From sequence record MT612989.1: a stretch of DNA of 64,000 bases; one strand, 5' to 3'. The translations under genes were made by a program, and so were the position numbers. Position 1 is the first letter of the stretch, and the number at the start of each line of letters is the position of its first letter. The notes under the pieces are model-generated. The model made no database searches and was not told where the DNA came from. It was given only the letters and a program-made list of their open reading frames with translations. Positions 39,316 through 52,486 of the stretch are shown one piece after another.

Positions 39316-39471
39316 TTGATTGTATATCTTCTCGCACTAGTATTCATCGTCCTCTTTGCCTTGGACATTGAAGAAGAAAAGGTGCGCATTCATACTTTTG
39401 CGCTAATCACATGCGAACGGGTCATTCATCCCGTAATTAAAGCGCACGATTCCAGATTGTGTTTTGATTAG
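39316..39471 (+). CDS. Possible small membrane protein (51 aa, TTG start)
   Basis: GAGG RBS, N-terminal hydrophobic run LIVYLLALVFIVLFAL. Confidence 0.4.
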   Translation: MIVYLLALVFIVLFALDIEEEKVRIHTFALITCERVIHPVIKAHDSRLCFD

Positions 39472-39681: not shown

Positions 39682-39794
39682 GTGAAGTTAGTTCAGTTGG
39701 TTAGAATGCCGGCCAAAAAAACGAAGTCTGATAAGATTTCATTCTGCATTCACATGCACGCCGGAGGTCGCAGGTTCGAGTCCTGCACTTCACC
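39682..39794 (+). ncRNA. tRNA-like RNA C (tRNA-Asp-like body, anticodon replaced by motif insert)
   Basis: GTTCAGTTGGTTAGAATGCCGGCC...CACGCCGGAGGTCGCAGGTTCGAGTCC; motif G39735, CTGCAT 39744. Confidence 0.8.
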
Positions 39795-39804
39795 TTCAAA
39801 TTCT

Positions 39805-39929
39805 GGAGAGTTAGCTCAGTCTGGTAGAGCAAAAGAATGTTAAAGAATACTGACAAGCATTCATGCTGCAAACCTTAATAACTAGGTAAATCTTTTTGTC
39901 ACGTGGTTCAAATCCCGTACTCTCCACCA
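39805..39929 (+). ncRNA. tRNA-like RNA D with motif insert
   Basis: GGAGAGT/ACTCTCC-A-CCA, canonical D arm, AAAGA/TCTTT stem; motif G39857, CTGCAA 39866. Confidence 0.8.
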
Positions 39930-39943
39930 ATTTTCGAGGGTTT

Positions 39944-40312
39944 ATGAATAAGTTTAATGACATAAATGACGAACTTGATTGTATATTGCATCGTTGTGAG
40001 ATTGTAAAGCGCAATCTTCGAAAATATTGTACATTTGCTGTTGAAATGCAGTATAGACTTATGATAAACTTCATTGGCATGGGTTGCTATCAACAAGTTC
40101 TGCCGATATTAGACAATCTAAATTATCACCCTGATACAAGTCAGTTTGATAATATTGAGATTATGCAAACTATAAAAGAATTGATGAAATGTGCAGATAA
40201 GCTCGATTTGCTGCATCAACAAGACGCATTTCATCAAATTAAATCGACTGCTCGTATTACAGAAGAAGCAAACATCTTCGCTGCGAAAGTTGGTCGATTT
40301 CTAGAGAAATGA
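39944..40312 (+). CDS. Hypothetical protein (122 aa)
   Basis: GAGGG RBS and ATG 39944; the longer track ORF overlaps RNA D. Confidence 0.75.
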   Translation: MNKFNDINDELDCILHRCEIVKRNLRKYCTFAVEMQYRLMINFIGMGCYQQVLPILDNLNYHPDTSQFDNIEIMQTIKELMKCADKLDLLHQQDAFHQIKSTARITEEANIFAAKVGRFLEK

Positions 40313-40313
40313 T

Positions 40314-40391
40314 GGCCCTATAGCTCAACACGGTTAGAGCAACCGACTCATAATCGGTAGGTTACAGGTTCGAGTCCTGTTGGGGTCACCA
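40314..40391 (+). tRNA. tRNA CAT, Ile2-like (or Met)
   Basis: Cloverleaf, loop CTCATAA, GGCCC acceptor resembling ileX, CCA. Confidence 0.85.
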
Positions 40392-40411
40392 AAATAAATT
40401 GAAAAAAGTTG

Positions 40412-40440
40412 TTGACAGACGTTTCATCAACGTGTAGTAT
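40412..40440 (+). promoter_or_regulatory. Early promoter
   Basis: A tract, TTGACA-17-TAGTAT. Confidence 0.8.
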
Positions 40441-40470
40441 ACACATTATCAACTACACGAGGAAAACATT

Positions 40471-40701
40471 ATGTCACATAAATTGCTAGTTATCACATCA
40501 ATGCACGGTTGCTACGTCGATTACGATTTCAGAACTGAAATGTTTGACAGATACATGTGTGATGTTGTGATTCCGAACGACTCTGTTGTTTTGTACTCGG
40601 GTACAGTTTCAATAGATGAAATTCGAGCAGTTGCGAACGAATGTTACGCTGACATCAAGATTGAAGAAGTCAGTGATGATGTTTTTGACAGCTATCTTTA
40701 A
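40471..40701 (+). CDS. Hypothetical protein (76 aa)
   Basis: GAGG RBS, downstream of promoter. Confidence 0.75.
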   Translation: MSHKLLVITSMHGCYVDYDFRTEMFDRYMCDVVIPNDSVVLYSGTVSIDEIRAVANECYADIKIEEVSDDVFDSYL

Positions 40702-40705
40702 AAAT

Positions 40706-40945
40706 GCCGCTAACTGGCGTACAATACACAGTGTATTCCCAACATTAGTGCAGACGTAGGCTCGCAACCTACGTTGGTACCGAATCACTGGGACCGAGTA
40801 GAAAGTGCATGTGAGATGTCGAAGTCTTGTATGTAGAAATAACGCTCGGCTGCTCTGAAATGCTGATTAGCTCTTACTTCGAAACTCTAATTGGGTGGAA
40901 GAGGTGTTGTGTTTGACGTGTGTTCGATTCACACGAGCGGCGCCA
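40706..40945 (+). ncRNA. 240-nt RNA with tRNA-like ends (tmRNA-like topology)
   Basis: GCCGCT/AGCGGC acceptor, G-CCA end, T arm GTGTG-TTCGATT-CACAC, ACAATAC/GTGTTGT closing helix. Confidence 0.65.
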
Positions 40946-40958
40946 AGAGGAAATTATA

Positions 40959-41480
40959 ATGAAACCATTGAAGTTCGTTGAGGCGTTCTCTAAAGAAGAA
41001 CGTGCTGCTATGACGATTGAAGAACGTAGCAGACTTCGTAAAATATATAACGAACGCTATCAAGAGTATGTTGATAAGTACATCAATGTATTCACTCGAA
41101 AAGACTTTCGAAGAGAGCGTTGCTGGGTTATTCTTGCACGATGTAAAAAGACTGGTGAAATCATCGGTCGAATTGAAAATAGTTTTAGTATGGGATGGTC
41201 TAAAGAACGTGTTCGTGTTATTCGACCGTATCTAAACGGTAATTTCACGGGCGATGATCGCTTCTCTAAAGCTGAGTACAACAAAGCGTGTGCTGAGTAC
41301 ATAACTCATCATGAGAAACAAGTAAAGTCTCTCAGAGAAGCTTACAAAGACACTCACGACGTTTTCTTATCTCGTGTGGGTAGTAAGAACTGTCCTGTTT
41401 CTATTGATTGGGATACGTATTACAGTAAAAAAGACAAACGAAACTTTGAATATCGAAATTTGAAATTCAAAGTTAAATAA
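40959..41480 (+). CDS. Hypothetical basic protein (173 aa)
   Basis: GAGG RBS, ATG 40959. Confidence 0.75.
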   Translation: MKPLKFVEAFSKEERAAMTIEERSRLRKIYNERYQEYVDKYINVFTRKDFRRERCWVILARCKKTGEIIGRIENSFSMGWSKERVRVIRPYLNGNFTGDDRFSKAEYNKACAEYITHHEKQVKSLREAYKDTHDVFLSRVGSKNCPVSIDWDTYYSKKDKRNFEYRNLKFKVK

Positions 41481-41485
41481 TTCAT

Positions 41486-41601
41486 AGTCGGGTAGCTCAG
41501 TGGTAGAGCACGAAGAATGATACTGACAAGTATCGCTCCAGCACTCCTTCAATTGCCTGTTAAGCACGTGGTCGCTGGTTCGAATCCAGCCCCGACTACC
41601 A
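41486..41601 (+). ncRNA. tRNA-like RNA E: GTT anticodon arm interrupted by 41-nt motif insert
   Basis: AGTCGGG/CCCGACT-A-CCA; CG[insert]TGC-CTGTTAA-GCACG; motif G41530, CAGCAC 41539. Confidence 0.8.
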
Positions 41602-43560: not shown

Positions 43561-43569
43561 TTGAATAAT

Positions 43570-43646
43570 TGCGGGGTAGAGAAGTGGTCATCTCGTCGGT
43601 CTCATAAGCCGGAGAACGCTGGTTCGAATCCAGCCCCACGCAACCA
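43570..43646 (+). tRNA. tRNA-fMet-like (CAT), atypical
   Basis: fMet-like body, loop CTCATAA; GGT/GCC instead of GGG/CCC; extra nt in acceptor 3' strand. Confidence 0.8.
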
Positions 43647-45166: not shown

Positions 45167-45241
45167 GGGCCGTTAGCTTAATTGGGAAAGCGCCTCACTT
45201 GCAATGAGGAAGATAGGGTTCGACTCCCTGCGTGTCCACCA
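45167..45241 (+). tRNA. tRNA-Ala(TGC), irregular acceptor stem
   Basis: CCTCA-CTTGCAA-TGAGG, G3-U70 retained, CCA. Confidence 0.8.
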
Positions 45242-50437: not shown

Positions 50438-50482
50438 AAGACATTTTACAGCAATTAATTATGAGGAAATGAACAATGTCAG
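50438..50482 (+). promoter_or_regulatory. Leader hairpin with CWGCA motif enclosing RBS and AUG of Ro60-like gene
   Basis: AA-GACATT-TTA-CAGCAA..GAGG..AATGTC-AG; ATG 50476 lies in the 3' strand. Confidence 0.75.
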
Positions 50483-51912
50483 TATTTATGAACGCAATGC
50501 AAACAAACGATTCACGCACAGCAAACGGTGCAGTTACTCACAGCACTTCAGGTAACGAGTGTCTAAACTTGTTCTTCGGTATTGCTGCTATGCGTGGCAA
50601 CGATCAGTCTAAAACACTGTTCGGTCGTGCGTTTGCAGAAAACCCAGAACTAGCGACTCGCATTCTTTTGTGGTCTCGTGATGTTCGAGGTGGTGCGGGT
50701 GAACGTGGTACTTTCCGTACTCTATTCACTAAACTTTGTAATGAACAGCCTGACGTAGCTCGTGCTGTAATGTCGAAAATTCCAGAACTAGGTCGTTACG
50801 ATGACTTGATTTCTGCTTTCGGTACACGTCTTGAACAAGATGCGATCACAATGTGGTCGAACGCAATTGTCAATGACAAGAATGGTCTTGCTGCGAAGTG
50901 GTTCCCACGTGAAAACAGCAAAAACGGTCATGTGTTCAAGCGCACAATCAAGTCTCTTGGCGTAACTGCGAAGCAGTGGCGTAAGATTCTGTCGCTTCTG
51001 TCTGACACTGTTGAGCAGAAGATGTGTGCGCAAAAATGGGATGCAATCGACTTCGGTAAGTTGCCTTCTGTAGCGTCTGCTCGTTATCAACAAGCATTCG
51101 GTCGTAACGCTTCAACACGTTACACAAACTACATCGAGTCACTTCAAAAAGGTGAAGCGAAGATCAACGCTGGCGCATTGTTCCCATACGATGTCGTTAA
51201 GAGCGTTAGTCACGGTAATGCGTCTGTAGCGAACGAGCAATGGAAAGCTCTGCCAAACTACATGGAAGGTTCTGATGAACGCATCATCCCTGTTGTTGAC
51301 GTGTCTGGCTCTATGAGCACGCCAATTAACGCAGGTACAGACCGTTCAGGTGTGACTTGTAAGCAAGTTGCAATGTCTCTTGGGATTTATGTTGCTGAAC
51401 GCAATGAAGGCATCTTCAAAGATCAGTTCATTTCGTTCTCAAGCGACCCGCACTTCCACCAGTTGCGCGGCTCTTCATTGAAAGAGCGTCTTGATAACAT
51501 GAATCGTTCAGGCGAAGACATGAGTACGAACATCGGTAAGTGCTTTGATGTTCTGCTAGAGCGTGCGAAGCGTGCAAATCTTTCACAAGAAGATATGCCA
51601 ACCAAGTTGCTTATCATGAGTGACATGGAATTCGATCAAGCAAACACTGGTGGTGGTTGGTACGGTCGCGGTGAACCTGCGAACTTCGATGCAATCAAAG
51701 CCAAGTACGCACGTGCTGGTTATGAAATGCCACAACTGGTCTTCTGGAACATTCGTGGTCGTCTTGGCAACGTTCCGGTTAAAGCTGGTGAAGCGGGTAC
51801 TGCACTGGTATCTGGTTGTAGCCCATCTATCTTGACTTCACTGTTGGGTGGTGAGCTTGAGCCAATCAAGATCATGATGAAAACTGTAGGCGTCGAACGC
51901 TACAGCTTTTAA
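50476..51912 (+). CDS. Ro60-like TROVE plus vWA protein (DUF2828-type)
   Basis: TANGA, RDVRGGAGER, PELGRYDDL, LAAKWFPRE; MIDAS VVDVSGSM; SDMEFD; VFWNI. Confidence 0.85.
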   Translation: MSVFMNAMQTNDSRTANGAVTHSTSGNECLNLFFGIAAMRGNDQSKTLFGRAFAENPELATRILLWSRDVRGGAGERGTFRTLFTKLCNEQPDVARAVMSKIPELGRYDDLISAFGTRLEQDAITMWSNAIVNDKNGLAAKWFPRENSKNGHVFKRTIKSLGVTAKQWRKILSLLSDTVEQKMCAQKWDAIDFGKLPSVASARYQQAFGRNASTRYTNYIESLQKGEAKINAGALFPYDVVKSVSHGNASVANEQWKALPNYMEGSDERIIPVVDVSGSMSTPINAGTDRSGVTCKQVAMSLGIYVAERNEGIFKDQFISFSSDPHFHQLRGSSLKERLDNMNRSGEDMSTNIGKCFDVLLERAKRANLSQEDMPTKLLIMSDMEFDQANTGGGWYGRGEPANFDAIKAKYARAGYEMPQLVFWNIRGRLGNVPVKAGEAGTALVSGCSPSILTSLLGGELEPIKIMMKTVGVERYSF

Positions 51913-51955: not shown

Positions 51956-52486
51956 GTGAAAATGTTCGATTGGGAAGCGATAGAAACAGCTATCAATAAC
52001 AGTCATCCAAATAGCACAATATACGTTGGGTGTGATAGTAAGCGTAAAAGTGACATGATTAGTTACGCGACTGTGATCATAATTCATCTTGAAGGTAGTA
52101 AAGGTGCTCAAGTGTTTAAAGCAGTTGAGACTGAACCTGCATACTTATCATGTAAAGATGGTATCAGAAGTCGATTGATGAATGAAGTATACAAAGCGGG
52201 TGAAACTGCACTAATGGTTAAGCCAATGTGCGGTACTAGAGGCTTTGAAGTTCACGTTGACATCAACCCTGACCCTACACACAAATCTCACGTTGCCTAT
52301 AACGAAGCTAAAGGTACTATATTGGGATATGTTGGTCAAGAGCCCGTGTTCAAACCTGATGCGTTTGCTGCGTCTTGTGCTGCTGATTACGACGCAGTTC
52401 GAAGAGCAGATAAAATCGCTAAACGAAAAGAACTTAGACGAGCTAAACGAAAAGCAAAGAAACAAAAAACAAAAGGGCGCAAATAG
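51956..52486 (+). CDS. RNase H-like protein, YkuK family
   Basis: IYVGCDS, RLMNEV, EVHVDIN, KPDAFAASCAAD. Confidence 0.85.
   Translation: MKMFDWEAIETAINNSHPNSTIYVGCDSKRKSDMISYATVIIIHLEGSKGAQVFKAVETEPAYLSCKDGIRSRLMNEVYKAGETALMVKPMCGTRGFEVHVDINPDPTHKSHVAYNEAKGTILGYVGQEPVFKPDAFAASCAADYDAVRRADKIAKRKELRRAKRKAKKQKTKGRK

Follow-up and report, generated by a model that had tools for sequence, protein, structure and literature searches.

A structured RNA gene in the phage tRNA region

The DNA analysed here (64,000 nucleotides, nt, of sequence record MT612989.1; hereafter the window) is that of a KVP40-like Vibrio myophage, 100% identical to vB_ValM_R11Z and 87% identical to KVP40 between positions 39400 and 42300. 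ARAGORN placed 28 tRNAs of the window between 40314 and 47440. Within this cluster lies a 240-nt structured RNA gene (the element), which had originally been predicted, from the letters of the DNA, to be an RNA shaped like transfer-messenger RNA (tmRNA) but devoid of alanine identity. The element sits in a 257-nt gap between two open reading frames (ORFs), and the segment is organized as follows.

40412-40440: sigma-70-like promoter site, TTGACA-17-TAGTAT, upstream of the element and the only strong promoter-like site
40471-40701: 76-codon ORF preceding the element
40706-40945, + strand: the element, a 240-nt structured RNA gene within the phage tRNA cluster
40959-41480: 173-codon ORF following the element

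No terminator was found between the element and the 173-codon ORF. In the phage records inspected the element had no gene annotation, the match covering only hypothetical-protein ORFs on its flanks or a short ORF call that overlaps it; annotation pipelines overlook this entire gene in dozens of phage genomes that have been deposited.

A BLAST search with a 271-nt query matched 49 phage records, every one a Vibrio phage of the KVP40 group. Nine representatives from about five lineages (the window, KVP40, V09, D482, F86, VS1, nt-1, QD01, and 1.081.O) were aligned, folded with RNAalifold and scored by pair counting. The fold comprised 67-68 predicted pairs with 92.7-92.9% of cells paired, and 35-37 of these pairs were altered on both sides. 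Pairing fell to 36-44% when partners were slid by 1-3 columns, and none of 500 shuffled controls reached the observed values. A covariance model scored 204-252 bits on the homologues and detected the element once per genome, throughout the lineages of the group. These results confirmed that the element is a real structured RNA gene, far beyond chance. Searches for wider homologues with two DNA patterns in IMG/VR and one in a metagenome collection returned KVP40 and VH7D only; the other loci matching the patterns, including one from a gut-metagenome assembly, were rejected as chance matches by profile screening. In the T4 genome and its tRNA region, covariance model and profile searches matched tRNAs only and no homologue of the element.

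The element was also present in environmental RNA. Four runs of RNA libraries, taken from two independent studies of seawater, were compared with window positions 40300-41500, and each run contained a short contig restricted to the element: 40719-40944 (a 229-nt contig, recovered from one sample in two runs), 40739-40942, and 40735-40906. Coverage was zero on the flanks (40423-40709 and 40956-41500), and the contigs ran without interruption across the whole interior, that is, unspliced. They represent two environmental variants with 3' ends at 40942-40944, and several of their differences from the window were compensatory within one hairpin stem (P7, described below): 40815G>A with 40826C>U, 40816A>U with 40825U>A, and 40816A>G with 40825U>C. 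The contigs are assembled and of low depth, and DNA carry-over is not formally excluded; with three contigs from two studies all bounded by the borders of the element, a discrete stable RNA is the best explanation.

tRNA-like ends and the enclosed core

The fold consists of a tRNA-like head formed by the two ends of the RNA and an interior core enclosed by a long-range helix. Its parts, all on the + strand, are listed in order.

40706-40712, +: 5' strand of the acceptor stem, GCCGCUA, paired with 40936-40941
40713-40721, +: stemless D-loop analogue, ACUGGCGUA, 9 nt
40722-40731, +: 5' strand of P2, CAA(U)ACACAG, the long-range closing helix formed with 40907-40915
40737-40793, +: arm 1 (P3-P4-P5)
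40737-40741 with 40789-40793, +: P3
40744-40746 with 40783-40785 and 40748-40751 with 40777-40780, +: P4
40753-40760 with 40768-40775, +: P5, the ACGUAGG/CCUACGU hairpin with loop CUCGCAA
40794-40849, +: arm 2 (P6-P7), with A-rich internal loops AGAAA and AGAAAUAA
40796-40798 with 40845-40847, +: P6
40806-40817 with 40824-40835, +: P7, with hexaloop GUCGAA at 40818-40823
40863-40906, +: probable H-type pseudoknot (helix X and a second stem), directly abutting P2
40863-40870 (CUGAUUAG) with 40887-40894 (CUAAUUGG), +: helix X, 8 base pairs (bp)
40875-40881 with 40900-40906, +: second stem of the probable pseudoknot
40907-40915, +: 3' strand of P2, UUGUGUUUG, partner of 40722-40731
40916-40934, +: linker AC and T arm GUGUG UUCGAUU CACAC, with the stem at 40918-40922/40930-40934
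40935-40945, +: 3' strand of the acceptor stem, G AGCGGC, with discriminator G40942 and encoded CCA at 40943-40945

The acceptor helix, the T arm and the stemless D-like loop described in the original prediction were all present. The acceptor stem has seven layers: six pairs from G40706-C40941 to U40711-A40936, followed by an A40712/G40935 mismatch. The six pairs were formed in every sequence and four of them changed on both sides, as seen in GCCGCUA/AGCGGC of the window, GCCCGCA/UGUGGGC of 1.081.O and GGCGGGG/CCCGUC of VS1. The D-loop analogue carries A8 rather than U8 and an invariant GG at 40716-40717 (9/9). Four of the five T-stem pairs were compensatory and the closing pair, equivalent to G53-C61, was invariant. 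The prediction of a helix in the anticodon or P2 position was borne out in that a long-range helix does close 175 nt, but its register is 9 bp, not the 7 bp proposed. P2 was 100% paired in the nine sequences with three compensatory pairs. The proposed helix, ACAAUAC/GUGUUGU, can form in the window; across the alignment it was 88.9% paired with no two-sided changes, two of its positions were broken in three or four sequences, and it was rejected.

The bases that set tRNA identity were read correctly in the window by the original prediction as C3-G70 and G73. The 3-70 pair (columns 3 and 241) was C-G in all nine sequences, so the element lacks alanine identity; a G2-U71 pair occurred in two sequences only. 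Base 73 was G, A or C depending on the lineage. The predicted G-CCA end holds for the window itself, but an encoded CCA is limited to the KVP40 clade and is missing from the other four lineages, including lineages in which the neighbouring tRNA-Met does encode CCA. Apart from the register of the closing helix and this restriction of the CCA, the predicted features lie where they had been placed.

The core was conserved, and most of its helices were supported by compensatory change. Four of five pairs in P3 were compensatory, as were nine of the 15 pairs of P4 and P5 together, and an invariant GAAUCAC lies between P4 and P3. In arm 2, all three P6 pairs (part of a 5-bp CCGAG/CUCGG helix in the window) and eight of 11 pairs in P7 were compensatory, and the P7 hexaloop was invariant; both hairpins named in the original prediction, P5 and P6, were thus present and covarying. 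A search for further covarying helices recovered helix X, which was 100% paired in all nine sequences; two of its pairs were compensatory and two changed on one side. The P8 hairpin and the apical P9 hairpin drawn by RNAalifold were dropped in its favour. The second stem is nearly invariant, with no two-sided changes. Helix X and the second stem probably form an H-type pseudoknot next to the closing helix. The pseudoknot holds a near-invariant block, CUCUUACUUCGAAAC, which differs in F86 by one indel and one substitution. Separately, GCUGCUC at 40849-40855 could pair with the 3' acceptor strand in the KVP40 clade, an alternative fold scored at 14 bits (E 3.6) by the tRNA-Sec model; this pairing was not kept in the other lineages.

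Candidate roles and relatives

The element belongs to a new RNA family, absent from Rfam, within the known kind of tRNA-like non-coding RNAs. No Rfam 15 model matched the window at this locus at gathering score, and none rose beyond noise at E<=10 on a 2.9-kb segment or on the element alone, the best noise match being tRNA-Sec (14 bits, E 3.6). ARAGORN called neither a tmRNA nor a tRNA on the element in the window or in seven homologous loci. The same tools detected Escherichia coli and phage tmRNAs. A literature search, the KVP40 genome paper aside, found no description of the RNA. The suggestion that the element represents an undescribed class of tRNA mimic is therefore supported: it is conserved, covarying and found in RNA libraries, and the Rfam and ARAGORN checks gave no match.

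The analysis showed the fold of the element, its conservation, that it occurs once per genome and that RNA libraries contain it. The element is probably, if by no means certainly, the gene for a non-coding, stable RNA of about 240 nt that is restricted to KVP40-like vibriophages, with a tRNA-like scaffold carrying a core that serves as the working part of a ribonucleoprotein. The tRNA-like domain would act as a handle for maturation and stability. The flanking pattern aaU|G ... N73-CCA|a is common to the element and the 28 tRNAs of the phage (in the KVP40 clade), with an A/U-rich leader, an invariant A-U at -2/-1, and G1; in nt-1 the element begins 11 nt downstream of tRNA-Met; and the close relative VH7D encodes a 395-amino-acid (aa) protein of the PolyA_pol/CCA-adding family (PF01743, 60 bits, at 163153-163554 of VH7D). 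Together these features led us to read the domain as a maturation handle. The 5' end would be made by RNase P, cutting at the invariant U(-1)|G1 junction (U40705|G40706), trimming would take the 3' end back to base 73, and in lineages without an encoded CCA a host enzyme, or the CCA-adding-family enzyme of the phage itself, would add the triplet. Protection of the RNA would come from the tRNA-like elbow, which may also serve as a docking site for tRNA-binding proteins, and the conserved 175-nt core would bind a protein or RNA partner. Such an RNA would be neither charged with alanine nor active as a tagging tmRNA.

Several points weigh against this reading. The processing by RNase P, the addition of CCA and the partner are inferences, and the core points to no ligand. 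The A40712/G40935 mismatch makes the seventh acceptor pair weaker. Four of the five lineages lack an encoded CCA despite having CCA-bearing tRNAs, suggesting that the 3' end of the element may differ from that of a tRNA. Finally, 10-13 nt separate the environmental contigs from the predicted 5' end, and termini and strand are not readable from the contigs.

For comparison with tmRNA (SsrA, RF00023), the reference was the Rfam consensus together with E. coli ssrA, in which seven acceptor pairs, a 10-11-nt stemless GG loop, P2a, one unpaired base and the T arm follow each other. The element has the same layout: a seven-layer acceptor, A8, a stemless GG loop (9 nt vs. 10-11 nt), a long helix in place of the anticodon stem, a linker of 1-2 nt, a canonical T arm, and a large knotted domain inside the helix. 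Like true tmRNAs of phages it also lies in a tRNA cluster, and it shares with several of them ACUGGC after the acceptor strand and GAC with the UUCGAUU T loop. The matching geometry and these shared sequences indicate that the tmRNA-like shape is real and specific. Judged from its sequence, nevertheless, the element is not a tmRNA, for every other defining feature fails. It has C3-G70 instead of G3-U70, a variable base 73 instead of A, and a CCA that is mostly not encoded; it is 240 nt long vs. 355-490 nt, contains one pseudoknot instead of four, and has no UUCGAC in the D loop. It matches no tmRNA model and has no conserved resume codon, tag or stop. A three-frame comparison of the nine sequences found no conserved tag peptide, resume codon, stop or C-terminal tail. 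In eight of the nine sequences the frame through the P7 hairpin meets a stop close to the conserved AGAAAUAA, whereas in F86 it continues for about 22 codons; its C termini are unrelated (SCM, AHS, KTA, VLK and LRT). Variation around 40886-40892 falls at every third base and resembles a coding signal, a periodicity accounted for by the pairing of helix X.

True tmRNAs do occur in related settings. The phage encodes a Ro60-like protein (discussed below), and of 50 viral records of IMG/VR with a homologue of that protein, searched in full, 21 contained true tmRNAs of 54-102 bits and 355-490 nt (loci L205-L216; e.g., L213:1501-1920 and L214:1501-1950, minus strand). ARAGORN, which misses several of the Rfam finds, predicted tags ending in VAA, LAA or AFA. 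In two loci the tmRNA heads the tRNA cluster, and a T4-type major capsid gene was present in the four most complete of the records with a tmRNA. Neither KVP40 nor VH7D has a tmRNA. When applied to 12 phage tmRNA loci, the covariance model of the element scored 9-18 bits; the tRNA-like ends alone aligned and the interior was dissimilar. Since true tmRNAs hold an equivalent place in distant T4-type phages, descent of the element from a tmRNA is plausible. As a statement of origin it is a tentative possibility that we consider doubtful, with no homology detected beyond the tRNA-like ends.

Whether a shrunken descendant of a phage tmRNA still works at the ribosome is a separate question. It could be an uncharged decoy that titrates host SmpB or stops trans-translation, or a rescue RNA that carries some amino acid but not alanine; a tmRNA-derived RNA that has lost alanine identity and tag would then replace the genuine tmRNA of distant T4-type phages. 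The domain geometry, with A8, the GG loop, the short linker and the long closing helix beside a pseudoknot, speaks for this reading, as do the sequences shared with phage tmRNAs and the occurrence of true tmRNAs in the 21 records, some at the head of tRNA clusters. We nonetheless regard either role as unlikely. The C3-G70 pair in 9/9 sequences removes alanine identity, a base 73 that may be G, A or C argues against any single synthetase reading that base, and only one clade encodes CCA. A conserved tag frame is absent, as are a conserved stop and C-terminal tail, F86 having no stop near the conserved position; the interior is unlike that of phage tmRNAs, and the Rfam tmRNA models and ARAGORN were silent. 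The decoy for SmpB or the ribosome that the original prediction had put forward found no direct support: no SmpB family match was obtained in VH7D, the neighbouring 173-aa protein is not SmpB-like, and no conserved tag frame is present. In a partnership with the Ro60-like protein, in the manner of bacterial Y RNAs, the tRNA-like domain would have the part that it plays in bacterial YrlA, and the ring protein would be bound, or a nuclease tethered, by the core or by the GUCGAA loop. Modules resembling tRNA occur in bacterial Y RNAs, together with a GNCGAA(N)G motif that has been implicated in binding of Rsr, and cleavage by RNase P and addition of CCA are possible for the YrlA module (PMC4201824). 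The element resembles YrlA (RF02553) in having a tRNA-mimicking module and a GNCGAA sequence, the invariant P7 loop GUCGAA recalling the published motif (PMC4201824), and in sharing a phage with a Ro60-like gene whose product PHROGs label an RNA-binding protein. Gene and RNA occurred together in all four RNA-bearing lineages tested, and T4 has neither; co-occurrence among close kin, however, is weak evidence. The ends of the element form an acceptor stem, whereas those of YrlA form the Ro-binding stem and its tRNA-like module is internal; the element has no D arm, does not match RF02553, and lies 9.5 kb from the Ro60-like gene. It is without the CWGCA motif found in the phage's other tRNA-shaped RNAs. 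Its GUCGAA is a hairpin loop, not a stem strand, and GNCGAA is frequent in the window (84 copies per 64 kb). The covariance model found no homologue of the element in 78 other viral contigs with a Ro60-like gene. We consider the Y-RNA-like role rather improbable, if less so than a ribosomal one.

The remaining alternatives place the function outside the RNA or deny that the RNA is the product. If the element acted mainly in cis, on the polycistronic transcript, cleavage directed by its tRNA-like fold would release the downstream mRNA just before that mRNA's ribosome-binding site, leaving the RNA as a by-product. In every lineage that site, for the 173-aa gene, begins 1-5 nt past base 73 or the CCA, and the missing terminator and the sole strong promoter-like site upstream (40412-40440) fit the same picture. 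tRNA-like ends would suffice for such a cleavage, yet the 175-nt interior is conserved, with invariant loops and compensatory changes; moreover, a different small ORF follows the element in D482, VS1 and nt-1, and the RNA libraries show the RNA itself and not the downstream mRNA. This makes a mainly cis-acting element quite unlikely. It is scarcely credible that the locus is an interrupted or decayed tRNA gene, whether intron-bearing or a pseudogene, or a gene for a small peptide. Neighbouring tRNA-shaped genes with 45-54-nt inserts in the anticodon arm, annotated in KVP40 as tRNA pseudogenes, and an 18-codon frame (MLISSYFETLIGWKRCCV) open in the window lend these ideas some appeal. The element, however, has no D stem or anticodon arm, matched neither tRNA nor group I intron models, drew no ARAGORN call, and was unspliced in the RNA-library contigs; purifying selection on its structure excludes a pseudogene. 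As a peptide gene the 18-codon frame was rejected: no ribosome-binding site was seen by eye on the alignment, a 1-nt indel in F86 breaks the frame, the only recurrent one, and in three lineages it reads on across the T arm; it also overlaps strands that are paired.

The stable non-tRNA RNAs that phage tRNA clusters encode lack explanation, and two of T4 have gone unexplained for fifty years. The element is a well-defined new case, conserved, with a fold proven by covariation and seen in environmental RNA, and KVP40 and its relatives grow on culturable Vibrio hosts. It raises the question of whether a tmRNA-like scaffold can be re-used for another job or turned against ribosome rescue in the host, and of how the element relates to the Ro60-like protein and to the tRNA-shaped RNAs nearby.

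Neighbouring RNAs and genes

Other unusual RNAs and the proteins mentioned above are encoded around the element.

39682-39794, 39805-39926 and 41486-41598: tRNA-shaped genes (Rfam tRNA, 50-54 bits) with 45-54-nt inserts in the anticodon arm, missed by ARAGORN
50476-51912: Ro60-like gene (DUF2828 and DUF7788), labelled 'RNA-binding protein' by PHROGs
51956-52486: RNaseH-like gene (PF04308), next after the Ro60-like gene

KVP40 annotates the insert-bearing genes as 'tRNA-Pseudo-3/4/5'. They resemble the element in cluster, strand, leader and CCA context and in joining the top half of a tRNA to an inserted module. They differ in keeping the D arm and anticodon stem, whereas the element has neither and a core of 175 nt. 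Their inserts contain CUGAYAAG followed by CWGCA; the latter motif, as originally claimed, is absent from the + strand of the element.

T4 produces two stable RNAs of unknown role, RNAC and RNAD, from its tRNA region (PMC3014915; PMC9697503). These RNAs ('species 1' and 'species 2') are, like the element, small and stable and are encoded in and processed from a tRNA region, and RNAC ends in a T arm and an acceptor-like helix. They differ from the element in length (139 and 119 nt) and architecture and have no detectable sequence or structure homology to it. In T4 RNAD (rnaD, L016 2054-2172, minus strand), CUGAUGG and CAGCAGAAAC recall the CUGAYAAG...CWGCA arrangement of the tRNA-shaped RNAs of the window, a possible link between the T4 species 2 RNA and this module.

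The 173-aa protein encoded downstream of the element had eight homologues, all inside the KVP40-like phage group, and its PHROG match is a family without assigned function. No Pfam family, Foldseek match, or SmpB-like or other recognisable fold was found for it. Its AlphaFold2 model had a mean predicted local distance difference test score (pLDDT) of 83, and the best VIA Z was 5.1 over 41 residues. The N-terminal 43 residues gave many HMG-box rows, with Z of 3.4-4.3 only.

A hairpin with a GUCGAA loop, the same hexamer as in the P7 loop, lies at 51884-51907 in the last codons of the Ro60-like gene; given the frequency of GNCGAA, the shared hexamer may be due to chance. Among the tRNAs of the cluster, an Rfam tRNA at 45167-45238 (44.9 bits) was absent from the ARAGORN list, and the tRNA-Met placed by ARAGORN at 43569-43642 had odd ends compared with the 43571-43642 given by Rfam.

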